Shown here: piece by piece, positions 9,063-63,762 of the stretch
Numbering within the stretch: position 1 is the stretch's first letter
Layout of the letters: each line of letters starts with the position of its first letter
DNA from: Rhodosorus marinus CCMP1338
Lineage: Eukaryota; Plantae; Rhodophyta
Direction of reading: 5' to 3'
NCBI GenBank assembly: GCA_029953675.1
Contig: JAMWBK010000006.1
Span: 186,001 to 250,000 of the forward strand
DNA: 64,000 bases
Position numbers and translations under genes: made by a program
Notes under the pieces: generated by a model
Told to the model about the DNA's origin: nothing
Seen by the model: only the letters and a program-made list of their open reading frames with translations
Database searches by the model: none

Positions 9063-9240
9063 TGTGTAATCTGTCTATGTTTTAGTGTCAGGCACCTATT
9101 TTAGTGTAAGACGTCAATGTTTTAGTATCCAGTAGTTTCTACTTTACTGTCAGGTATGTTTTAATTTACAGTAACCGAGACTATATAAGGCCTAGTTTTG
9201 CTAGATCTTGAGAATTGAGTAAAGACAAGTTGGTTCAGAG
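9063..9240 (+). mobile_element. Probable 5' LTR (~165 bp) plus tRNA-Met-type PBS of a second, truncated LTR retroelement (host of the gypsy insertion)
   Basis: Starts TGT, contains a TATA-like ctatataagg and ends ...AAAGACA (9227). It is followed by AGT-TGGTTCAGAG, one base short of the canonical PBS TGGTATCAGAG. No second copy of this LTR was found in the window. Confidence 0.45.
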
Positions 9241-9256
9241 AGTTCTAACAATTGGT

Positions 9257-9547
9257 TGACACGTTCTCCACTAACGAATGTCCGTGATCCAAAATAAATT
9301 TAAATTCCCGTTTTGTTCTTATCTTTTATCTATCTTGGATACCCTCCTCTAGCTTCTAATCCTGAGACGGAAGGTCGTAACTTCCGTATTTATAGGCTTC
9401 CGGTTCATGTCCTGGGTTTTCTAGACTACTATTATTAGATCTAGACTTATCTAGTATTAGCCAAAAGTCAGCCATTTAGCTCGACTATTATTAGACCTGT
9501 TTTCGGCTACACGCCTGAAGGCTGACTTGTTCGGTCATGTAGTAACA
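9257..9547 (-). repeat. 3' LTR of gypsy element
   Basis: Direct repeat of 12697-12987, about 20 differences in 291 bp by eye (~93% identity). TG...CA termini; preceded on minus by a purine-rich PPT. Confidence 0.95.
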
Positions 9548-9559
9548 ACTCCTCCGCAC

Positions 9560-11165
9560 TGAAGGAAAGAACTATCTCGTGGAAGAAGAAGCTGCCTTGT
9601 GGAGGTTTGTGTCATACCGGATTTGTTTCTTGGTAATCTGGTTCTGCGGTAGTTGATGGTAGGGTAACCATCTCAAATCGCCCGTTGTCTCGCCTTCAAA
9701 GTAAACGAAGTATTCATTTCAGGTTCTTTTCATCTCGACGATGTCCTAAGAACTGAATTCAACTCGCGCTGTGGTATGTCTGGTTGTAATGCAGGAACTA
9801 CATGCGAACCTTCAGGTTCCGGTCCATTGAACTTCCGTAATAACGAGAAATGAAAAACATCATGTAGTTGAGAATCCCCCGCGAGCTCCAGCTTAGATGC
9901 TACGTTACCAATTTTTCGTAGAATGTTAAACGGTCCGACATATCTGGGCCGAAAAACTTTTGAATCTGGGAGTTTGAAGATTCCGTGTTGACAAGAGCAC
10001 ATATTCGCCTGGTTCAAAGTCAAGGTCTCTTTTGCCTCGGTCATAGTAGAAGCGTTGTCTTTCTTGGGCGTAACGTAGATTGGCGCGGGCCAAGGAGTGT
10101 TGATCCTGTTGGCGGCGTAGGAGGTTTGTGGCTGCTTCCGGTAAAGGGGTTGTCGGGGTATCGTCCGGAATAATGAGATCAGGTAGTAAGGATAGATTTG
10201 CCCCATAAAGTAGGTCAAATGGGGAGAACTGGGGTTACGCTTCCAATATCTGACGATTGTACGCCAGCTCTGCAATCGATAGGTCTTCTGCCCAATTCGT
10301 TGCAGTCAAATTACACCTCAGGTACGTCTCCAGCGTCTGATTGACTCGCTCTGTCTGTCCGTCTGTCTGTGGATGATATGCTGTACTCAAGTTTTGCCTT
10401 ACTTGCAGCATCTTCAACAATTCCCTCCAGAACAGTCCCGTAAATTTTGGATCTCGGTCAGAAAAGATGTCTGTAGGTATACCAGCAAACCTAACCCAAT
10501 GACGTAAGAACAGCTTCGCGGTTTGTTGCGCAGTCGCCGTTGTCGTTGTCGGTAAGAAACGGGCATACTTTGTGAACCGATCGACGATCACGAAGATTGC
10601 GTCGAACCCGTCCTCGGTTAGAGGTAGGGTGACAATGAAATCCATCGATACGGATTGAAATCTCCCGTCTGGAACAGGCAGTGGATTCAACTTTCCCGCT
10701 GAGTGTCGGAGTGGTTTTTGCCTCTGACAAACTTCGCAGGTTCTTAAGAATTTCTCGATATCCTGCTTCAGGGTTGACCAGTAGTAGTTTCTCTTAATCA
10801 GGTTCCGGGTCTTGGTGATCCCAAAATGTCCCCCGTTGGGTTCATTATGGTAACTTTTGAGGAGAGCGGTGACCATGATTTCCGGGACGCATATTCGGTT
10901 ATGCAAATAACAAGGAGTCATTTCGGCGAATGAATCCTTGCTGCCGGTACCGCTCCGGATGCTCAAAGATTTCGCTGAACTCCGGGTCCTGCAGGTACGC
11001 TTGCCCCCACTCTGGATTGGGTACAACTGATACGGCTGTTAATTGTTGTATGGCGTGGCGACATATCGCATCCGCAATATTCTCCTTGCCCTGTTTATAT
11101 TTGATGTTGAACTGAAAGGGCATTAACCGATATAAATATCGGGCTTGTCGCTTCGTAAGCTGTTT
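9560..11165 (-). pseudogene. pol remnant: RNase H C-terminus, integrase (HHCC zinc finger, DDE core, GPF/Y motif), chromodomain; frameshifted
   Basis: KQLTKRQARYLYRLMPFQFNIKYKQGKENIADAICR (RNase H end); HNEPNGGHFG...CEVCQ (HHCC); VSMDFIVTLP, IFSDRDPKFTG, STAYHPQTDGQTERVNQTLE (rve); RYVGPF and HDVFHFSLL; EYFVYFEGETTGDLRWLP (chromodomain). Split over several frames. Confidence 0.95.
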
Positions 11166-11627
11166 AGGAACGTGCTAATCAGCAATTCATCCCTGCGTCC
11201 GTCGTAAGCCTTCGGTTGCGGGGGGGGCCTGGATCTTTATGAGTGACGGCATTCTAACACTGGTTCCTAGGTCTCAGGTGTTCTGGTTTTTTCTGGGTTT
11301 TCTGGTTTTCAGGTATCATCCCGCCTGGGTTTAAGATCATCATCTGGTTGGGGATGTCGACTCGCGCTTGATAGTTGCGTTGGAAGTCTTGTCCCAAGTA
11401 TCCCGGGCTCGCCAAACCCAGAATACAACCCGAAAAGAAACCAGAAAATGAATCAGAAAAAGTTACACCAGGAAAAATTGAAAACGAGAAACCGGATGTG
11501 AAAACCTGAGACCTAGGAACCAGTGTTAGAATGTCGTCACTCATAAAGATCCAGGCCCCGCAACCGAAGGCTTACGACGGACGCAGGGATGCATTGCTGA
11601 CTAGCACGTTCCTAAACAGCTTACGAA
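11152..11627. repeat. Inverted repeat: arms 11152-11279 and 11504-11627 (gag 5' end duplicated head-to-head), 224-bp spacer
   Basis: ttcgtaagctgtttaggaacgtgct...ggttcctaggtctcaggt is the reverse complement of acctgagacctaggaacc...gcacgttcctaaacagcttacgaa, with about 3 substitutions and a G-run indel. Confidence 0.95.
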
Positions 11628-12696
11628 CATGTTCTAAATTACCACGACTACCCGAAGATGACGATGAATATAAGATTACCCTGGCCGACGGTTATCTCAC
11701 TGGTGACGCTTCCTATTGGTGGTCACTACTTCCCGACAGCCAGAGACCGTCGACATATGAAGGATTCGAGAATACGCTTAAAGCCCAGTTCTACCCAGCG
11801 GGCGCTAAGATCATTCACATTCCGTTTGTTCAGAGGCTAACTACCCTGAGAAGCGAGAGACAAGACGCAAAGATCCGTGCGAAACAGCAACTAGCACAGG
11901 CAGAGCAGAAAACGACTGTAGCAGCATATTCGTCGGCATATTTCAATAAATGCCTGATCCAGGTTGGAGAAATCTCGGACTCGGAGAAATTTGAGAAATT
12001 CGTCGAAGGCCTCAAACCGGACATCAAGATATACATACATATCCAAGACGTGCAGACCTTCGAAGCGGCGCAGGCCCCTGCTCTAAAAATCGAAGGCGCT
12101 GAGATGGCCAGCTACACATCGAGCATGAGAAACCATCAAGGTTCAAGTCAGCGGAAAACAGAAGCTGTGAAATCCGTGACGCCTCTTCCCCTCGTGAGCC
12201 GAGGAACCCGTTCCGGACGCCCGTACCAACCGACCAACCAGGAGATGAAATAGCGCAGCTACGCCAACCTTATCTGTAATTTTTGCGAGAAAAAGGGGCA
12301 TACCCAACGGATATGCTGGGACAACCCAGATCGGGATCCGACTGTTTCGAAATCGGCACCCACTAAAACACAGGAGTTAAACGAGGAGCAGCGGTAGGAA
12401 GCGCCGACACTGTTGCTGACAAAGGCGTTCGGGTTCCCTTCAGTGCAAACTTCACGGTCACAGGGTTCTTGAATGGGAAGAAGCAGGCCCTCCTGATCGA
12501 TGCCGGAAGGTAGCCATTCCGTCCTGCGCGGTATCCCCGACGCCACTCCAATAATCCCAACTCAACATGAGCGATTGGACACCACTGCCGCAGGAGCATC
12601 AATTGAGATTTTGGGAGAAGGGAACGTAACCTTACAGCTAGGTGATCACTACTTAGAGTGGCAGCCCTATATCGTAGAAGAAGCGATGAGATCAAT
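11531..12696 (+). pseudogene. gag (capsid, CCHC zinc knuckle) and N-terminal aspartic protease, oriented opposite to LTRs and pol; disrupted
   Basis: YDGRRDALLTSTFL, YLTGDASYWW and FVEGLKPDIK (retrotransposon gag). In-frame TAG at 12251-12253, then CNFCEKKGHTQRIC (CCHC). Overlapping-frame ALLIDAG with a 1-nt frameshift to SHSVLRG (protease). Truncated at the LTR edge, 12696. Confidence 0.9.
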
Positions 12697-12987
12697 TGAC
12701 ACGTTCTCCCCTAACGCGCGTGTCGGTGATCCAAAACAATTTTAAATTCCCTTTTTGTTTTTATCTTTTATCTATCTTGGATACCCTCCTCTAGCTCTAA
12801 TCCTGAGACAGAAGGTCGTAACTTCCGTATTTATAGGCTTCCAGTTCATGTCCTGGGTTTGCTAGACTACTATTATTAGATCTAGACTTATCTAGTATTA
12901 GCCAAATGTCAGCCATTTGGTTCGACTATTATTAGACCTGTTTTCGGCTACACGCCTGACGGCTGACTTGTTCGGTCAGGCGTAACA
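12697..12987 (-). repeat. 5' LTR of gypsy element
   Basis: Direct repeat of 9257-9547; followed on plus by the TSD TTGGT. Confidence 0.95.
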
Positions 12988-13159
12988 TTGGTCGAATTGC
13001 TCAAGCCGATGCTAGCCATTTTCTTAGTAAGAGCATAAAAACTAAAACCATCTAGATCTGCGGAGAGGACGTTTCTTTTCTGTTCTGGACAGGCTTTTGG
13101 AATATTATGGTCAACGTCTGTACATAAAAGGAGTATTCTAGGATCAACAAGGCCATGGA

Positions 13160-13310
13160 TATAGTATAAAACAGTATACAACAGTATAAAAACAGTATTA
13201 AAAGTATATAAAATTATTAAAATGTTACATTCGTTAAAATGTTAAAATTATTAATATTATTAAAATTATTAAAAGTGTAAAAAGTGTAAAAAGTGTAAAA
13301 AGTATAATAT
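13160..13310. repeat. AT-rich degenerate tandem repeat (~9-bp unit, AAAAGTGTA-like)
   Basis: acagtataca acagtataaa aacagtatta aaagtatata ... aaaagtgta aaaagtgta aaaagtgta aaaagtata. Confidence 0.8.
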
Positions 13311-14365: not shown

Positions 14366-15917
14366 ATGGAGAGGGGATGCGGATTCGCTATGAATCCTGG
14401 TTCGAGGATTCTCCGTCGGGCTGGGATGCAGGGCTTGCTGAGGACGAAACGAATGCGAGCAGAATTCGTTACGGTTTCAGCGATGTCATCTGATCCGTTG
14501 GTTCGTCCGAACATAGTTGTACTGGGAGGGGGATTCGGAGGGCTGTACACTACTCTTCACTTGATGAATATGCCCTGGAGCCGTCTCCAGAAGCCTAGAA
14601 TTACGCTGGTGGACCGCTCCGATCGATTTGTTTTCCTGCCACTTCTGTACGATCTACTTTCAGGTTCTGTGTCCACGTCGGAGATTGCACCATACTATGT
14701 AGAGCTCCTGCAAAATTCGGACGTAAGGTTCCAAATGGGAGCTATCACCAGCCTTGACCCAGATGCAAAGACCGTTCAGGTCGATGGAAAGGATGAGGAG
14801 TATAATATTGGATTTGATAGACTGGTAATAGCTACTGGAGCAGGACCGGTGCTGGATTCAATACCAGGAGCTGAGTACGCACATCCTTTCGCTAGCCATA
14901 TTTCTCCCAGTGCTGACCGTTTTCCACGACCCCATCGCTGATCCTTCAATAATTAATTGTGTTCGTTTTAGGGACCACGCCTTTGCGTTCTATGGCCTCG
15001 AGGACGCTTTCTTGGTGAAGGAAAGACTGCGAGGGCTACTTAGCTCGGAACTGAGTAGCATTAAGGTTGTGATTATCGGGGCAGGATTCAACGGCGTTGA
15101 GCTTTCGTCGACGATAGCTGACGTCCTGGGTGAGAGAGGATGTGTGACGTTGCTCTCAAGGGACGACGGAATCTTGAAAGACTCGAAACCCCACAATAGG
15201 ACAACTGCCGAGAAGTCGCTGAGAAGGCTCGGAGTGGATGTGGAAACCAAAGCTTCCGTAGATCGGATTGAGGAGGGCACTGTGTTCTTCAAAAGCGAAT
15301 CCTCTGAAGAGGAATCGATCCAAGCGGATTTGATCCTTTGTACGGCTGGCACGCGGACATCGAAGTTCCCTGGATTGAGCAAACTACCTCAGAACGGGAG
15401 AGGTCAACTCCAAACCACGAAGACCCTTCAGGTGAAGAAGTCGTCGGGAATATTTGCTCTCGGGGATATTGCCGCGAGCACTGATGTTTCATCGGCAACA
15501 CCCTCAAAGGCTACAGCGCAAACTGCACTCCAGCAAGCAGACTACGTAGCTTGGAATGTATACGCTTCCATCGCCGACGAACCTGCCCTGGCGTACAGAT
15601 ACCTTGACTTAGGAGAGATGATGTCCTTGGGTGACCACGACGCGACAATATCAGCTCTTGATTCGATAAATCTCTCCGGGAAGGCGGCAGTGGCTTTCAG
15701 AAGGTACGTGGGCATCTTCTCACCGTACAACACGTCTTCGATTCCTGACTCCGTCCCTTCCTCGCCTCCTCCGCAATTCACTACATGTAGAGCCGTTTAT
15801 CTTGCCCGAATGCCAACCGACTTGCACCGATTAAGGACCACTGCTTCTTTTGCGACCAGACCATTCGTTTCCAAGGCCAACCAGTCTCTGACAGAACTGC
15901 TTAGGGGAATTTCTTAG
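14366..15917 (+). CDS. NDC1: Type II NAD(P)H dehydrogenase, plastid NDC1/NdbB-like, 3 exons
   Basis: IVVLGGGFGGLY (FAD), DRSDRFVFLPLLYDLL, VVIIGAGFNGVELS (NADH), FALGDIA, ATAQTALQQA, YLDLGEMMSLG and RRAVYLARMPT. Introns 14875-14971 and 15704-15790. N-terminal transit-like peptide. Confidence 0.85.
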
Positions 15918-38645: not shown

Positions 38646-41600
38646 TTGCTGGTGGCTTATGTGTCGTTGGGGTTGGGGTTCGATATGGATATGGGTGAAG
38701 AGTCGTGCAGGAAAACAGCGACGTTTTGTAGGCCCTTGTTTTTGGAGAATTCAGTAGTCTGGAAACGCAGTAGACGGCCGAGGTCTGCGTCGTGTTTGCT
38801 CTGTGAAAATGGAAGCGTGGACCGCGGAGATACGAAAGGTTTCTGGAAGACCGCAAGCTCTCTGAAATGCTCGGGGGATGCGAATCGGCTGAGGGAACTT
38901 GTAGACGGGCTACGGAAGGCACCGGTGACAGTTGCAGCTCCCGACTACACGGACCTGAAGCTCCATATGATGGTTCTGCAGGCGTTCTTCTCCAGGGACA
39001 ATGTACAGGGCGCCATGGATCACTTTGAAGATATGAAAGTTTATGGAGCGAGACCAGATGTAGTCATCTACAATTTTCTCATGAGCAACCTCGCGCGGCG
39101 TAGACGTCTAAAGGGTCTTTTCAAATTGAGAAAGGAAATGGAGGGCTACGGAATTCCAATGGACGCATGTTCGTATTCAGCTCTGATTCACGGCTACGCT
39201 GTTGTTGGAAACATCCAAATGGCGTGGTCCTTCTACGACGAAATGAGAAGCCGGCACATTGTGCCAAACGAGAGTGTGTTTGGCAACCTCGCCAGCGCTG
39301 CTTCAAAGAGTGGGGATGTTAGAAAAGTTGAGCAAGCAATCAGGAACATGCTTTCATACAAAATCAGACCCAACCAATACGTATACAACGCACTTATAAG
39401 TGCCTCTGCGAAGAGCGCTGACATCCACACGGCCATCGCAACCTTTGTCAGAATGCAGAAGGAAAAGATTAGACCTGATACGGTCACTTTCACGACTCTA
39501 ATGGCTGCTTATGCAGCAGTGAACGATCTAGAAGGAGTCGTAACAACGTATAACGAATTCGTTTTACGCGATCTGGAACCCGATGTTTTTATAATGTGTG
39601 AGCTGATCAAAGCTCACGCACGACTCGGCAAAGTCGAAGATGCAGAAAGGTGCTTTCGAGGCATGAAGAAGAGCGGATTAAATCCTGACCGGATCGTCTA
39701 CAGCGTTATGATCAAAGCTTATGGTCGAAGAGGGTCTGCTGACAAGGTCAGTCGCCTCCTTGAGAACACCGTCCTTCCTTGTTTCCGCTTGAAGTGTCTC
39801 ACCATGCTGAACACAACGTGCACACCGTGATTTCGATGTCTTTGGATCTGGTTTAGGCCAGGGAAATGTTTGAAGAGATGTGCGATGAAGGTATAAAACC
39901 AAACAGTGTGGTTTTCAATGAACTCATGGACGCGTACAACAAAGCTCGAGACCACGATGCCGCAATTCGAGCGTTTTCGCAAATGCAAGGTTTTCACGTT
40001 CGACCAAATTCGTGGGCTTATACCACCCTTATCCATGCGTACGCTCGTAAAGGAGATTTGAAGGGAGCCGAGAACGCTCTAGAGGACATGTTGAAGCGGA
40101 AGTTTAGGCCCTTTACTGCGACATTCACGACCCTCATCGATGGTTTTGCAAACGTAAGTTGTATTGTGCCTGTAGGACGGGAGGCGTCCACGTCTTCTCT
40201 ATTCTGATGGCAGATGTTGTCTCGTTCTTGGGATCTCCACTAGGCTGGCAATGTACGCAAGGCGATACACTATTACTCAAGGATCAAATGTGACCAGTCG
40301 ATGCCGTTGGACTCGCGTGTGTTCAATTCGATCATGCGTGCTTACTTTCACGCGGGTTATTTCACCCGAGTTGATAGACAATACAAGGATATGCTGCGCA
40401 GAGGGGTAAAGCCGGATGCACACACCTACAGCATGTTGATAGAAGCAAATTCTGCAATAGGTAGAGGTGAAATGATTGAGCTTCTACTGAAAGACATGAA
40501 GGAGAGGGGAGTACAATCGGATGAGGTGGTGGAGTCATCCGTTCTTCGGGGCTATTTCAACAACTTTGGGGCTGATGCAGCTGAAAAGTACCTTCAGAGC
40601 TTGGGGACCGTGCTCGACAAGCATCTGCTGACGATGATCGCACTGTTTGTGGATCGAGGCCAAAGCCAGCTCGCAGTTGAGTACTGCAGGAGGACAAAGT
40701 CCATGGGAGTGACCAACAAGCGACTCCTCGCCGTGTGGGTGCAGGCGCTGCTTCAGAGCGGCGACCGAGAGGGTTGTGTCTCCATTGTCCACGAGTTTGC
40801 TGAGGCTGGCGTCTTCGTTGAATGTGAATCTGTGAAGAGGATCATCGAAAGCAATCTGTTTACTGATGAAGAGGCCCGGGACTTGTTCAAGGGTTTGGGG
40901 TATTCAGTGGTTCTCGGATCAATGCTAAACGCGTACGCCAAGCTTGGAAAGTTCGACCAAGTAGAAGCGTTGGAGGTGGATCGTGAAAGACGGGGCATCC
41001 CGCGCTCGGTGGAGGGAACCCTTGCCTTTCTTAGCCTTCAAGCAATGAATGGCGAGAGCTCGCTTCAGTCCGGGATCACGGAACTCCAGTATCAGCGGGT
41101 GCTCGTAGAAAGAAATCTTTTGAGTTCTGTTCTCCAGATCTTGTCGGAGGGCGGATGCGCAGCCGCAGCTTTGGTCGTATTCGAAGAGATATCTCGTCGC
41201 GGATGGATTCCTACGCTGGCCTGTTATAATTCAGCGATGGCCGCCTACGCAAGACTAAAGCGACCTACCGATATTTTGAGACTAATGAACACCATGCGCA
41301 GGGAGCACTTTGCTCCGGATACAACGAGCTACAACAAGCTGATTGAGGCGTATCTAGCGCAGCTCAAGCTTGCCGAAGCTGTGAGAGTTCTTCACGATAT
41401 GAGGAAGGAGGAGGTGGTGCCGAACGTTGCGACTTTTCATATTTTGATGCGCTCGCATGTGAAGTTGGAGGACTCGAGCATGTTCACTGCCCTGTATATG
41501 GAGCTTTTGCGCCAAGGACTGAAACCGAACGCCATTACAACATCAATGCTCAGTCAAGCATTGTCCCACGACAAGAGCGTGCCTCAACAGTCTGAGGACC

Positions 41601-41746
41601 TCCCAATTCCCTTGTCGGTGCTCGAATGCTACGGCCGATTGTACGACAATGAAGCTGTAGATCTGGGAAAACTGTACAACCAAGCAGTTGCCGCTATCGC
41701 TTCTGCGGAGACAGCTCCAACGGTGGCACGGCAACGGGCGATGTGA
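38646..41746 (+). CDS. Pentatricopeptide-repeat (P-class PPR) protein, probably organellar, 3 exons; start codon uncertain
   Basis: Many 35-aa repeats (PDVVIYNFLM, PNQYVYNALI, PDTVTFTTLM, PDRIVYSVMI, PNSVVFNELM, PDAHTYSMLI, PDTTSYNKLI, PNVATFHILM). Introns begin after ADK| (~39748) and FAN| (~40154). Confidence 0.92.
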
Positions 41747-44457: not shown

Positions 44458-45426
44458 CTACTGTCTTCTGAGTGCCAGTTCAGTCTTCTGAGATTGGGAG
44501 TTCTCCTTCTCGATTCGATCAAACCATCTCATAACAGATTCGTAAGTTAGAAACATTAGCGCCGCGTTTGGAACAACTCGGAGTAGATGTGCGCCCATTC
44601 CTCCGTAGAGTCCCTTCATTCCCTCTTCTCGACCGATCGTACTCAAACTCTGTATCATGGTGCGATATTTGGGAAGTTGCCCTGGAGCAGGAGGAATTCG
44701 CATTCTCGTCCGCACCACCTCGTGCGGATACGTCAGGGCACTGGCGAAAAGCTTCGCGACTGCAGCTGCTCCAAAGAGTTCAAGCTTGGAGGCCTCAACC
44801 TTTTCACCAGTCGCTGTCCCCGGCTTCGATGCAACGAGGCGCTGCTTCAGGCCCTCATAAATAACAAAATGAATTGCACCCTCCGCCACACCCCAATAGG
44901 ATGCCGAAAGTCCGCGGAAAAACCCGCTCACACCTTCCTCCTGAAAGATCCTCGAAACCGAATTCCTGAATCCCTCGTAGGCATTGGCCTCTCCGGCAAA
45001 AAGTTGGAGCCTTGTCTTAACCATCCAGATGGGATTTGTCACAGTGTTGGACACGACGCCGGCGACAACAGCGGAGGCAATGTGAACGACTGGGTTCTCT
45101 TCCCATCTTTTAACAAGCCAAGACTTTGTGGTTGAATAAGCCCAGAAGTAGGTAGATCGTGCAGGGAGGATACCCAACAAAGTCGGCGGCAACCCTCGAA
45201 AGAAACCCCTTACCCCTTCGCGCTGCAGGATTTGCCCTACGATCGTACCGGGAGAACTCAACGAGGATCCTTGCAGTTTCGTCTTCACAACCTCAATCGG
45301 GCAGGTCACCGTCGAAGAAAGTGATCCAGCAACCCCTCCCGCCAGCAACGAAGCCAGTTGCTTCTGTTCCGCAAGCGCCGCCAGCCTCGCCTCCTTCTTC
45401 CCCCCAATCTGACTTACCGCACCCAT
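44458..45426 (-). CDS. Mitochondrial carrier, RIM2/SLC25A33/36-like pyrimidine nucleotide carrier
   Basis: Three Px[D/E]xx[K/R]x[K/R]-type repeats: CPIEVVKTKLQ, NPIWMVKTRLQ (W variant typical of RIM2/folate carriers), YPHEVVRTRMR; GLSASYWG; LLRVVPNAALMFLTYE. Confidence 0.88.
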   Translation of the reverse strand: MGAVSQIGGKKEARLAALAEQKQLASLLAGGVAGSLSSTVTCPIEVVKTKLQGSSLSSPGTIVGQILQREGVRGFFRGLPPTLLGILPARSTYFWAYSTTKSWLVKRWEENPVVHIASAVVAGVVSNTVTNPIWMVKTRLQLFAGEANAYEGFRNSVSRIFQEEGVSGFFRGLSASYWGVAEGAIHFVIYEGLKQRLVASKPGTATGEKVEASKLELFGAAAVAKLFASALTYPHEVVRTRMRIPPAPGQLPKYRTMIQSLSTIGREEGMKGLYGGMGAHLLRVVPNAALMFLTYESVMRWFDRIEKENSQSQKTELALRRQ

Positions 45427-58864: not shown

Positions 58865-61800
58865 TCAGCTCGGTGGCGGCGGGGGCACTCGATAATGTTG
58901 ACCTGGCGCAGCGTAGTCGCTCGGAGGTGGCGGAGGGGGTTGCTGAGCACCTGCGTGATAGGACAGGTAAACGTCTTGACATTAGCTGATAGTTGCGCTA
59001 GCTAAACCTATTTCAAGATAGTGGCCGCAAAACTCACCAAAGTCGTAATTGCTCGGCATCGGTGCTGGGTCCGGGGCCAGTATGGTTGTACTAGGTACTC
59101 CTCCTCTCAAAGGAGTGCCAGGCATCCCCCTGCCTGGTGTTCCTGGCGCTGCTCGAAGTGGTGTGCCTACTCCAATTCTTGGGGTACCGGGTGGGTATCT
59201 TCCCGGAGTATTCGGGGGGTACCCGACTACGTGCGGGTTTTCCAGAGTCTTGAAATTCTTCTTGAACCAGTCGTAGAGAGCCGAGGGTGTTGGGTGAAGC
59301 ACGTTCCTCAATTTGAAGCCATCCGGAGTAACGATGACACTCGCCCGATTCACTGTCTTCGTTCCTGGTACAAATCCAAGCAAAAAGCTCCCCACTCTGT
59401 CCCTCCGCGTATCCGGACAGATCATGTAAGGAATCCGCTTCGGATCCCTGTTCTTCATGTCCCGGAGCGTGGCTTGAAGTTCGGCCCAGGAGACGTTCAA
59501 AAACTTGTCCCGGAAGCTAACCGCTTCGTTGTAATTCTGAACAATTGGGTCGATAACGCGAGAGAGAACTTCGTCCAAGCTCTCGTATCGCTCTGCCGTC
59601 GGACCAGAATTAGCCTCTACGTACAACAAGTTTTCCTTTCCGTTTATCACTTCCATCTCTTCGTTCACTTTGAAGTGCGCCACCACCCCCTGGTACAGCT
59701 TGTAAGTGAACGACACGGACTTCTTCGTGCTTCCCGGCCTAATAATCACCTCTCCAATCGGCGCCGGTTCCATAAGGCGCTCTGCTTCATCCGCAGTAAC
59801 GTCTTTCCAGAAGGGGTGCCTGGTGGACCGGTTCGCGAGATTTTCCTTACGAATCTGAACCAACATCTTGTCCCTCCGCAGACTCTTCTGCTTCTCGAGG
59901 GCCTTCTCCCGCTCCAAAAACTTCTCATCCCTGATTTCATCGTAACGCTTGCAGTAATCGTCGTAGAAAATCGGATCCTGAAAGCCGCTCATCGAGGCTG
60001 GATTGTTAAGTACTGACGCGCGACAAGAGAGTTTGACCTTGTACTCCTCGACAGTCAGCTCCTGCACTCTGCACATCGCCGAGCCCCCCGGAGTAACTCT
60101 CTCTACAAGTTCTTCATCTGTCAACCGCTGGTCAGAAAACTCCATTTTATGAATGAAACCCCGAATGCGCCCGTTAGCCACCATACATGAAACGCCGCTT
60201 CCGCTGTCAATGACCCTCAACTTCTCCGCTGTCACCATGGAGCCTATGTGTAGTTGAGTATCTGGATCCATTCCAGTGATACACCTAAACAGCACCTTCG
60301 GAGTGGGTTCAGTGAGCGGCACCCTCCAATCTCGGTACGGCTCATTGAACTCCTCCTCAATCAATCTAACCGTTTCCCTGTTTTTCCCCCGGCCCTTGGT
60401 CTCTAAATCCTTCGCGTATTGCTCCAGATCAAGGGCCTCCAGGAGTTCTGGATTCTCCATTAGCTCAAAGACAACTGCCGATGGATCCTTCCTCTTCGAT
60501 GCATCCTCGACAGACTGCTCGGCAATCTTGATTGCCACGTTGTAGTTCTCAAGGTGCATCCGCGTGTCCTCCAGAGGTTCGTAATCGGCAAATCTATCCA
60601 CATTCTTCTTCTTGTCCTTGCGCAGGCGCTTCCTGATAGCAGCAGCTGACTTTCCACCACTCGCCAGTTCGGGATCTCGAACCCTTAGGAACCCAGAAGC
60701 CGAGTAGAAGGTATTGTTCCCCAGCATATTCTTGACGAGCATATCTCTCCGGGATATCAACATGCCATTCTCGGAAGTCTCAATGGCTTGCAGCAACGAT
60801 TTCGCCTTTCTCGGTCCAAGTCCTCCTACATATTGCAATAAAGGTCTCAAGTGCGAGTGAATAATTGCCCTGTTAATATCGAAGCCGACTGTGTTCACAG
60901 AGCGAATCATAGACCGCCGTAGGACGTCCTTTTGGACCTCCGCAGGCAGAAGTCTTCCATTGTTAGTAAGTGGCAGATCGCGATAACCTTGTTTGTCCGC
61001 AACAATCGCTGCGTAGACAGTTAACGGCTCCTGAGTCAACCTGGCCAAACCCACGCCACGCCTCTGCAAGTACGAGAGCTCGGCAAGAGAGGCAATGGCA
61101 AGTTTCGTCTTGGCGTACGGAGTCACTAGAGTGTCCGGAACCAGAATTATTCTTTCCTTAACAGATCGTTCCAAATCCTGAAAGTCGCGTTCATCGTCTC
61201 TCGGAACGCCTAGGTAGTCCAACTCCTCCCGTCTAAAGTAGTCTCCCAGCAGCGCCAGGATATCATCACGAAGCCTTGTGGCGTCTTGACCTCCAGACCC
61301 AATCCCAATAGCGATGCAGTTCGGCTCGTACACCTGTATGACGTGCTTCCAGAGAAAGTTGCTGATCTCTTCTGGGATGGGATCGTCCCGCCTACGTCTC
61401 AGCCAACCTGCTGGGACTTCGTTCGTTCCAATCACTTCTCCGTCAGCGTCAAGTGCGACAAAGGTGGCGATCTGTGGACTTCCAGCGTATCTCTTCCTGG
61501 CCTCTGCAGTAGCTTCTTGAGAATCCCCTTGAACGTCCTCGTCTTCGTCTTTGGATGTCACGGTTATAGCCAGAGTCTTAGGTGATTGTTCCAATCCTTC
61601 GATCTTCACCGGGCCTTGGTGAAGCTCTCTGTCAATGCTCAGCGTCAGGGCCGCTTTCTGCTGCAAAATTGCTCTATCAAGGAGCTCCTTGCGTAGCTCC
61701 CTCTTTACCTCCTCGATTATAGCTCCGAGGGCCTCCTTGAGGATCATCCGTCTCTGGTCGTTCCAAGACATGGCCGTAGCACTGAGACTCTGCGAGAGAT

Positions 61801-63762
61801 AAAACCTGTTTAGGTCGTCCACCAATTCTTGGTAGTCTGTTTCGTTCATTGAAAGCTCGATTGTTGCGAGCCCTTCTTTCTCCACTTGGTGCATCATGAG
61901 AAATTCACCATCTCCGGACTGGGTCAGCAGTGCAAGCGGTTTATTCTGTACGGTACAAAAAGGTCGGAGCGGGTTGTCGTCGTCCACCTGTTTACGAGCC
62001 TTGGATGTCGGCATCGTCGAGACTTTCGCCGATGACCTGAAGGCGCTTCTCACATGTCGCATAATACCGCTTTCGGAGATAATCTCCGTTGTAATCAACG
62101 AACGTGCCAACTGCAGACACGTGGTAGGGTCGTCTAAGGTGCTCGAACGTGACTGAGAGGATGCCCAAGTAATGGCGACATCCTGTGGCTCAGAGGCAGG
62201 GTCAGCTGGTCTGTGTAGTGACTGATACTTTTGAAGGTTCTCAGATAGCTGGGACGCAGAAATGCCAAAGTGCTTCGCCAGCTCCCCAAGGCCAGATTTG
62301 CACAGGAACCGATAGCGTTCACGACGACGAGGCCTGCGTCGGCCTTTCTCCTCCCCCGTATCTGCTGCTCCGGTCGTAGAATAATACTTCTCCTGGAGCA
62401 GTGTTACGTGACGCTCTAAAGTGTTTATCTGCATCAAGTCGTTCGTAAACCCAGCTTCATCAGTAAGGTTCTTCAGTATATTCGTGTCGTCTTCAATTCT
62501 GGCCTCGGGTGCCTTGTTCAATTGCTCCAGAAAGTTCTTTTTCCTTTCAGTCAAGTGACTCCATCGGCGATCCCAATCCATCACTGTCCAGAGGGAAGTC
62601 CAATCGCCTAACTCATCAAATCCGGAACTCTTCATCAAATCTCCCATGATGTACTCCTTTCTGTAGACTGCCACGAACGGAATATCCAGAGTCTCCACGT
62701 GCAGAAAAGCAAGAAGAACAGATATCTTGCCTATAGTTGCCTCTCTTTCGTACTCATCGTGATCTGGACTACTGAAAGCCGACTGGTAAATCCACTCCGC
62801 TTCCTCCCCGAGATCTTCCTTATGAGCTCGTCTCCTATGTCCAAAATGCTCCTGCAAGTACTCGGGCATGTCCTTGCTTCGGATTTCCTCATCGCGATCG
62901 GTAAGGAGCCTCTCACGAGCTAACGACGGGTCCACCTTGATAGTCAGTTTTCGCAGATCCTCCATGTCGTTGATTTGAGTCTCCTCATTGGCTTCCTCTT
63001 TCCTGAGCATTGGTCCTGCATCTTTTCCATCTGCACACAGAGATGTTTCGAAATCGCGGGGATTAAAAATTGATCAGGTCGACGACGATGATTGCAAAAG
63101 TTACGATAAGACATAAAATTCAAGGAAACCTTCCGCTTACCTTCATCATCTGACACGACAAGAAAATCGATTCCTTGCAACTCATCCACATCCTTCTGGT
63201 CTCCAAAAATTTCTCGGGCGTCCTCTAGAGCGGCTGTATGAACTTCATCCGCGCCGCCCTTTCTTCGTCGTCTGTCGCCCTCGTCATCCTCGATGAAATT
63301 GTCCATTTCGTCTCCCTCGTCATCGTCATAGTCAATGTCTTCATCCGGACCTCGTCGCCTACTGTCTTCCTTCCCCTGATTGCGAACCTCACGGTCTGAC
63401 TCGTCCTCGCTCGCATCTCGTTCTAATCGTCTCAACTTTCCTTTCTTCTTTACCTTCACTCCAGCCTCCTCCAGAAGATCGAGATCTCCTTCTTCCATCT
63501 CTATCTCTTCTCGACCTCGCTTCCTTTTCTTTTTCTTCTTTTTAATGGATCGGGCTTCATCATCCTCATCCTCGTTCTCCTCTCCGCCGGCTTCTTCATC
63601 TCCGACCAAAAAATCGTCCTGCTCGTACTCGTTTGGAACATCATCATCCTCGCTAGAATCAAAATCCTCCGAGTCCTTGTCCTCATCCTTCACTTTAACT
63701 ACCACCTCTTCCTCCTCCTCCTCCGAACCTTCAGCTGCCTCGTTTTCCACAAAAGAACTCAT
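58865..63762 (-). CDS. SPT6: Transcription elongation factor / histone chaperone SPT6, 3 exons
   Basis: Acidic N-terminus, EEAEWIY, DIPFVAVYRKEY, YqgF (VALDADGE), HhH (QYVGGLGPRKA...FYSASGFLRV), LEDTRMHLENY, S1 (RGFIHKMEFSD), tandem SH2 (GEVIIRPGS). Exons 63141-63762, 59038-63030, 58865-58950. Confidence 0.97.

Follow-up and report, generated by a model that had tools for sequence, protein, structure and literature searches.

Introduction

Integrated retroelements and proviruses carrying an internal inversion are a recognised and routine class of defect (PMC8473067). In such copies an intact pair of long terminal repeats (LTRs) with its target-site duplication (TSD) encloses a flipped block, the junctions lie at short homologies, and a large deletion and loss of coding capacity accompany the inversion (PMC8473067, PMC1950507). 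Abnormal template switching produces complex LTR elements (PMC1950507). All of these hallmarks recur in the locus described here, a single Ty3/gypsy LTR retrotransposon copy on the minus strand at positions 9257-12987 of a 64-kb stretch of contig JAMWBK010000006.1, nuclear DNA of the red alga Rhodosorus marinus CCMP1338. This whole stretch is hereafter called the window and all positions refer to it. The locus departs from the described cases in that it is red-algal and chromovirus-like, that one breakpoint lies at the 3′ edge of the primer-binding site (PBS), and that a duplicate of the gag 5′ end renders it hairpin-capable. It is best explained, at a probability that we place at roughly 0.85 for the account as a whole, by one insertion of a chromovirus-like Ty3/gypsy element on the minus strand, which has undergone an inversion, a second internal rearrangement and later decay.

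The Ty3/gypsy chromoviruses (Metaviridae) share with the element their LTRs, a 5-bp TSD, a PBS, a polypurine tract (PPT), a Ty3-type capsid, a CCHC zinc knuckle, a protease homologous to retropepsins, an integrase bearing the domains H2C2, rve and SH3 and, tentatively, a tail that resembles a chromodomain. In contrast to them the element is devoid of reverse transcriptase (RT) and most of RNase H, its gag-protease region is inverted, and autonomy is impossible.

Two systems of transposon silencing also invite comparison. Mu killer of maize is a partial inverted duplication of a transposon 5′ region downstream of a promoter and is hairpin-capable (PMC11624286), an arrangement that the present locus resembles. 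Mu killer, however, derives from a DNA transposon (MuDR), and its heritable silencing in trans and its small RNAs are genetically proven, whereas the locus in R. marinus is described here from its sequence, and active target copies were found neither in the window nor among the proteins searched. Flamenco-type clusters of PIWI-interacting RNAs (piRNAs) likewise hold transposon sequence antisense to a possible long transcript. They consist of many nested transposon fragments, whereas here a single element stands in a gene-rich region, which does not constitute a cluster. We know of no PIWI pathway in the lineage of R. marinus and, to our knowledge, the control of transposons by RNA silencing is essentially undescribed in red algae.

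Related Rhodosorus transcripts and element boundaries

A search with the gag protein of 5.8 billion proteins, the open reading frames (ORFs) of the Rhodosorus transcriptome among them, returned a sole close relative, the R. marinus transcriptome protein P0001 (64% identity in BLASTP, 71% at the amino-acid level over the full alignment). The transcript of this relative, L001, is 1457 nt long and carries on one strand, in order, R/U5, PBS, leader, gag, zinc knuckle, protease and a Pro/Glu-rich linker. With the integrase protein one close fragment was obtained, the best match being 74% identical. A second transcript, L002, reads integrase, stop codon, PPT and LTR. Both transcripts are 65-72% identical to the element in DNA sequence. 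The predicted proteins searched, again including the Rhodosorus transcriptome ORFs, contained no product of the 9257-12987 locus or of a near-identical family member. Metagenome contigs gave no match to the family, either in a protein-pattern scan or in an exact 22-mer scan, and there is no Rfam match in the element region.

The outer structure is that of an LTR retrotransposon (Table 1), with a direct LTR pair ending in TG..CA and a TSD of 5 bp, where 4-6 bp is the criterion for this class. The LTRs differ by 17 substitutions and three indels over 289 aligned positions (94.1% identity; Kimura two-parameter distance, K2P, 0.061). The U3 part of the 3′ LTR is homologous to the 3′ end of L002, and the PPT is placed as in that transcript, where the integrase and its stop codon are followed by GGGGAGGGA and then TGTGAC. 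The empty site would read ..GAGTTCTAACAATTGGT/CGAATTGCTCAAGCC... An earlier note on this DNA had assigned the LTRs, the PPT and the pol remnant to the minus strand and had bounded the unit by a TTGGT TSD. The repeat alignment, the layout of L002 and the integrase domains found with Pfam agree with the first assignment, and the two TTGGT copies at either end with the second.

Primer-binding site and inverted block

After U5, L001 reads ..TTATCA-AC-TGGTCTCATCGC, and the element has a PBS at the same offset from its 5′ LTR. The two sites match at 11 of 12 positions, for which the chance probability at a fixed position is about 2e-6. The earlier note had placed the PBS some distance away, at a PBS-like TGGCGAGCC (11406-11414). 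Since the C-terminal part of the L001 protease aligns there, and the L001 matches to RVP and Asp_protease_2 in Pfam cover the part homologous to 11332-11414, these letters are codons L-A-S-P of the protease C-terminal part (..ASPGYLGQDF..). In the same alignment the protease C-terminal end of L001, SPGYLGRDFLNYYQAKLNLPNQMLLLKPEEQPEE.., is matched by ASPGYLGQDFQRNYQARVDIPNQMMILNPGGMIPENQKTQKKPE on the minus strand of the window from 11412 downward. What had been taken for a minus-strand leader at 11280-11405 is thus the end of the protease followed by the Pro/Glu-rich linker. Two arguments that depended on the misplaced PBS fall with it, namely that CAA is present at both junctions and that priming at this site would have copied an insert into both LTRs. 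Tf1-like self-priming was considered and rejected, as no complement of the PBS is visible by eye in the R region of the LTR.

That the gag-protease block runs opposite to the remainder of the element had been recognised correctly in the earlier note. Its placement exactly between the 5′ LTR and the PBS, with an end at 12696, is not sustained; the PBS adjoins the LTR and the block ends at 12682. By blastn, positions 266-1314 of L001 align with 11530-12681 on the plus strand (within this, 546-1314 with 11873-12681), and positions 1322-1390 align with 11409-11341 on the minus strand. The protease is continuous across the change of strand. Its N-terminal part ends in ..WQPYIVEE at 12681-12682 on the plus strand and the chain resumes with ASPGYLG.. 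at 11412 on the minus strand, a loss of at most 3 nt or one codon with which the protein alignment agrees. These are the two junctions of the block, J1 at 12682-12687 and J2 at 11412-11415. Because they have one protease breakpoint in common the block is, on the evidence of the alignments, a two-break inversion of 11415-12682 and not an insertion between LTR and PBS. The 1.28-kb segment that the earlier note regarded as inserted is colinear with L001 across the strand flip at a single protease codon.

The second breakpoint of the inversion lies directly 3′ of the PBS. Here the letters GCGA (12683-12686, plus strand) can be assigned either to the complement of the PBS, as its last 4 nt, or to the protease codons Ala-Ser, and constitute a microhomology at J1. 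If the L001 leader is taken as a guide to length, approximately 60-70 nt of the 5′ leader were probably lost at this break.

Inverted repeat

Downstream of the protease linker, where RT would be expected, stands a 132-nt duplicate of leader and gag 5′ sequence (arm A′ in Table 1). It meets the linker at a junction termed J3 and the RNase H tail at J4 (11151/11152). With the corresponding segment inside the inverted block (arm A) it creates an inverted repeat of 132-bp arms and a 216-nt spacer, approximately 97% identical in the core, where 128 nt contain three substitutions and, within a C/G run, one 4-nt indel. The inverted repeat of the gag 5′ end had been reported in the earlier note as 11152-11279 / 11504-11627; it is genuine and extends to 11152-11283 / 11500-11627. 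We note that the indel is explained by a run of eight G residues on the plus strand (11215-11226, in the minus-strand gag stub), and that homopolymer lengths in sequence derived from Oxford Nanopore Technologies (ONT) reads are possibly unreliable.

The divergence of the arms (3/128) and that of the LTRs (17/289) do not differ significantly (Fisher p = 0.14; binomial 0.05). Because the arms are no more diverged than the LTRs, the duplication is, by this measure, not older than the insertion and dates from the last reverse transcription and retrotransposition or later. The earlier note had arrived at a similar time of origin, at or after the last reverse transcription; the comparison of arm and LTR divergence upholds it, whereas the supporting argument from copying of the insert does not survive the relocation of the PBS.

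Similar AACCNGAA-type repeats are present in the leader, ahead of gag, and in the linker that follows the protease, at positions 170-215 and 1399-1445 of L001 and at 11415-11499 and 11284-11331 of the window. A tandem repeat at 11281-11309 also resembles the leader. Within L001 the similarity of leader to linker has a score reached by none of 300 shuffles. The repeats look like a conserved feature of the lineage and are a likely hot spot for template switching. A model that reads the start of the plus-strand block as linker, the block belonging to a tandem gag-protease unit, is less likely, as the first 85 nt of the block are closer to the L001 leader (score reached by 0/300 shuffles) than to the linker (15-18/300).

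Coding capacity

The gag region, 11531-12394 (+), is matched in Pfam by Ty3_capsid (2e-9) and Retrotrans_gag (1.4e-7) and is interrupted by one premature stop, a TAG at 12251-12253. The CCHC zinc knuckle CNFCEKKGHTQRIC occupies 12275-12316 (+). The N-terminal part of the protease (12397-12682, +) has DAG in place of DTG/DSG and a +1 frameshift near 12508-12511; it is homologous to the protease of L001, in which RVP scores 6.5e-6, yet the enzyme is split by the inversion. Three Pfam domains identify the integrase remnant (Integrase_H2C2, 5e-21; rve, 2.3e-9; SH3_Tf2-1, 3.5e-13). It is distributed over three reading frames with one in-frame stop and shares 68% nucleotide identity with L002. A Chromo domain is matched weakly in the L002 homologue (E = 0.026, below the curated cut-off) and has no match in the window copy.

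No RT-like sequence occurs in any frame between the LTRs, nor an RT domain in the ORFs scanned with Pfam. All of the RT and most of RNase H, which in the gypsy gene order precede integrase, are gone from the element, which reads as a deletion derivative and not as a different family. With RT absent and none of gag, protease and integrase intact, the copy is non-autonomous and most likely inert. With an LTR divergence of 6% it is an old, decayed relic.

Genomic setting

A second copy of the element family is not present elsewhere in the 64-kb window, and the locus is for this reason described as a solitary insertion in an intergenic stretch. The surroundings of the insertion are low-complexity intergenic DNA, with AT-rich tandem repeats of period 9-20 nt on the right, at a distance of about 180 nt (13163-13307), and on the left a 19-nt repeat about 130 nt away (9075-9126).

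The rest of the window is rich in genes, among them Spt6, two PPR genes and genes for a cyclophilin, a PI3/4-kinase, an eIF2B subunit and a mitochondrial carrier. When window ORFs were looked up exactly, the mitochondrial carrier alone had a record: its ORF (44461-45426, -) is identical to an NCBI protein from contig JAMWBK010000006.1 and falls in a cluster with a protein of the R. marinus transcriptome. At 14366-15917 (+) a pair of ORFs that overlap in different frames, 14366-14941 and 14910-15917, match the N- and C-terminal halves of Pyr_redox_2; they may be one gene for an oxidoreductase of the NDH-2 type, with a short intron or an indel of the Nanopore assembly. Spt6 at 58982-63762 (-) is similarly divided, by an intron or a frameshift, into a 272-residue ORF (SPT6_acidic) and a slightly overlapping ORF of 1342 residues (HTH_44, HHH, SH2_2), for the latter of which an exact look-up gave no annotated protein record. 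The PPR-repeat genes, of 394 and 481 residues, are adjacent and in tandem at 38646-41746 (+).

Table 1. Features of the R. marinus element and a neighbouring gene, in window coordinates. Sequences of minus-strand features are given in minus-strand letters.
Feature	Position	Strand	Basis or remark
Left TSD, TTGGT	9252-9256	.	Read directly; identical to 12988-12992
3′ LTR, 291 bp, TG..CA	9257-9547	-	Direct repeat of 12697-12987; 94.1% identity without gaps
PPT, GCGGAGGAGT	9548-9557	-	Adjoins the 3′ LTR, which starts TGTTAC
Integrase remnant (H2C2 zinc finger, rve core, SH3_Tf2-1), chromodomain-like tail and pol stop codon	9572-11054	-	Pfam; translation
RNase H C-terminal tail, last ~32 residues, RQARYLYRLMPFQFNIKYKQGKENIADAICRH	11055-11151	-	Translation; directly upstream of integrase
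Arm A′ of inverted repeat: last 31 nt of leader and gag codons 1-32	11152-11283	-	Inverted repeat with 11500-11627; translation MPSLIKIQAP..LNSLRS
Pro/Glu-rich linker after protease, NPGGMIPENQKTQKKPEH, with AACCNGAA-type repeats	11284-11331	-	Aligned to KPEEQPEEQPEE in L001; J3 at its 3′ end leads into the leader copy
Protease C-terminal part, (L)ASPGYLGQDFQRNYQARVDIPNQMMIL	11332-11414	-	Alignment to residues 98-125 of the L001 protease
Inverted block: 116 nt of leader, gag, CCHC knuckle, protease N-terminal part	11415-12682	+	Pfam; L001 alignments
Arm A of inverted repeat	11500-11627	+	Inside the inverted block
PBS, TGATCTCATCGC	12683-12694	-	2 nt from the 5′ LTR; same offset as in L001
5′ LTR, 291 bp, TG..CA	12697-12987	-	R/U5 part aligns with the 5′ end of L001
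TATA box in 5′ LTR, CTATAAATA	12830-12835	-	Sequence reading
Right TSD, TTGGT	12988-12992	.	Read directly
Mitochondrial-carrier ORF	44461-45426	-	

Discussion

How might the element have come to its present form? The inversion flipped the segment between a nucleotide of the leader and protease codon ~97, now 11415-12682, and RT with most of RNase H was replaced by the 132-nt copy of the leader 3′ end and gag codons 1-32. Before the inversion the extra piece was a direct repeat of the gag 5′ end; the inversion converted it into an inverted repeat. Beyond the anatomy, the inversion, the inverted repeat and the decay, which can be read in the element itself, we infer an origin by template switching, with which short homologies at all four junctions would be compatible. 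At J1 the letters GCGA are common to both sides. J3 falls within the AACCNGAA repeats of the leader and the post-protease region, and since leader and linker are both made of such repeats a ready homology would have been at hand. At J4 the letters ACGAA are possibly common.

Two routes can be envisaged. The rearrangements may have been errors of reverse transcriptase in the last replication cycle. Plus-strand strong-stop DNA ends at the 3′ edge of the PBS, and the position of J1 at that edge is a pointer to this route. Alternatively they may have arisen after integration, by DNA repair or switching during replication, one form of which might be an insertion templated by snap-back, the gag 5′ end being copied as RT and RNase H were deleted. 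Snap-back self-priming of minus-strand cDNA at the supposed PBS is a different proposal and was rejected: beyond the arm lie the gag C-terminus, the knuckle and the protease and not the RNase H tail, the two leaders differ, and the supposed PBS is protease.

We caution that several points weigh against the account of one insertion, two rearrangements and decay. The anatomy was read from the assembled sequence. A tRNA scan found no tRNA gene in the window, and the placement of the PBS relies on the match to L001. The canonical 5′ leader, the junction of linker to RT and the exact microhomologies of J2-J4 are deduced from a relative 65-72% identical in DNA and not from a full-length copy of the family. 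Lastly, it is possible, though no more than that, that a transcript of the locus yields small RNAs.

The source of the sequence raises the question of an assembly artefact, in which chimeric Nanopore reads or the assembler would have created the inversion or the inverted repeat. The CCMP1338 nuclear assembly (GCA_029953675.1) was built from ONT reads with 6-kb size selection, using NextDenovo and polishing with Pilon (PMC10250338), and reads of this kind are known to include fold-back chimeras. The greater part of the inverted block, however, is unique in the window and hence no palindromic copy of its neighbour, and the arms of the repeat differ by the three substitutions and the indel. At 3.7 kb the element falls, moreover, below the 6-kb size for which reads were selected; it is embedded in a contig of 2.47 Mb, and its junctions are at biologically meaningful points. 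An artefact is very unlikely. We regard as equally improbable a composite origin, by which a second family copy would have entered in or beside the first in the opposite orientation, later deletions leaving a mosaic. Insertions are often nested or head-to-head, and the repeat regions of the two leaders do differ, both of which would suit such a history. The plus-strand piece, though, has no LTR end of its own, and there is neither an extra LTR nor a second TSD. The end of the plus-strand protease and the start of the minus-strand protease fall at the same codon with no more than 3 nt lost, a coincidence for which independent deletions would have a probability of roughly 1e-3.

The structure of the predicted RNA calls for separate comment. 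A transcript from the 5′ LTR would run for about 1.27 kb antisense to the N-terminal part of the protease, the knuckle, gag and the leader and continue in sense through the C-terminal part of the protease, the linker and the gag 5′ stub. A 521-nt stretch around the inverted repeat is predicted to fold at -313 kcal/mol compared with -144 ± 6.6 kcal/mol for shuffled sequences (z = -25.6). An antisense RNA with a hairpin of about 130 bp could therefore form and is structurally sound as a model. To this extent the earlier note, which had foreseen a transcript reading antisense through protease and gag and folding back on itself, is supported by the reading frames and by the computed fold of the RNA.

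From that structure the note had gone on to propose a reversed insertion of the gag-protease segment between 5′ LTR and PBS, the product of which would act as a natural silencer of the Mu killer type through small interfering RNAs (siRNAs) made by Dicer. Antisense gag and protease do lie downstream of an LTR with a TATA box, the hairpin of about 130 bp would be stable, and transposon-derived hairpins start silencing in maize and have been discussed for EVD of Arabidopsis (PMC11624286). The structural half of the proposal is nevertheless refuted, since the letters taken for the PBS encode protease and the actual site lies next to the LTR. The functional half is unsupported. The window holds no other copy of the family, the closest predicted proteins are only 64% (gag) and 74% (integrase) identical, both metagenome scans were without a family match, and L001 and L002, at 65-72% DNA identity, are too distant to serve as targets of siRNAs. 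The copy is also old, as its 6% LTR divergence indicates, and bears no sign of conservation. In the papers searched we found no report on Dicer, Argonaute or RNA interference in Rhodosorus. The proposal in its entirety is accordingly very improbable. The narrower claim, that transcription from the 5′ LTR covers the flipped block with its 132-bp fold-back and furnishes small RNAs that keep this retrotransposon lineage silent in R. marinus, has only a slender chance of being correct. Rearranged retrotransposon relics are common by-products. The locus is an ordinary rearranged relic, a defective LTR retrotransposon of a known kind, internally inverted and partly deleted, and the silencer idea is unproven.

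Significance

Taken alone the locus is of little weight, being one more decayed and rearranged retrotransposon copy. Its value is as a worked example, in which a related transcript relocates the PBS and converts an apparent insertion into a two-break inversion, and which flags the leader and linker repeats as likely template-switch hot spots of the lineage. If the hairpin does yield small RNAs, it would open a first way to study how stylonematophycean red algae silence transposons and, were the silencer reading true, the element would represent a self-made, Mu killer-like silencer in a red alga.

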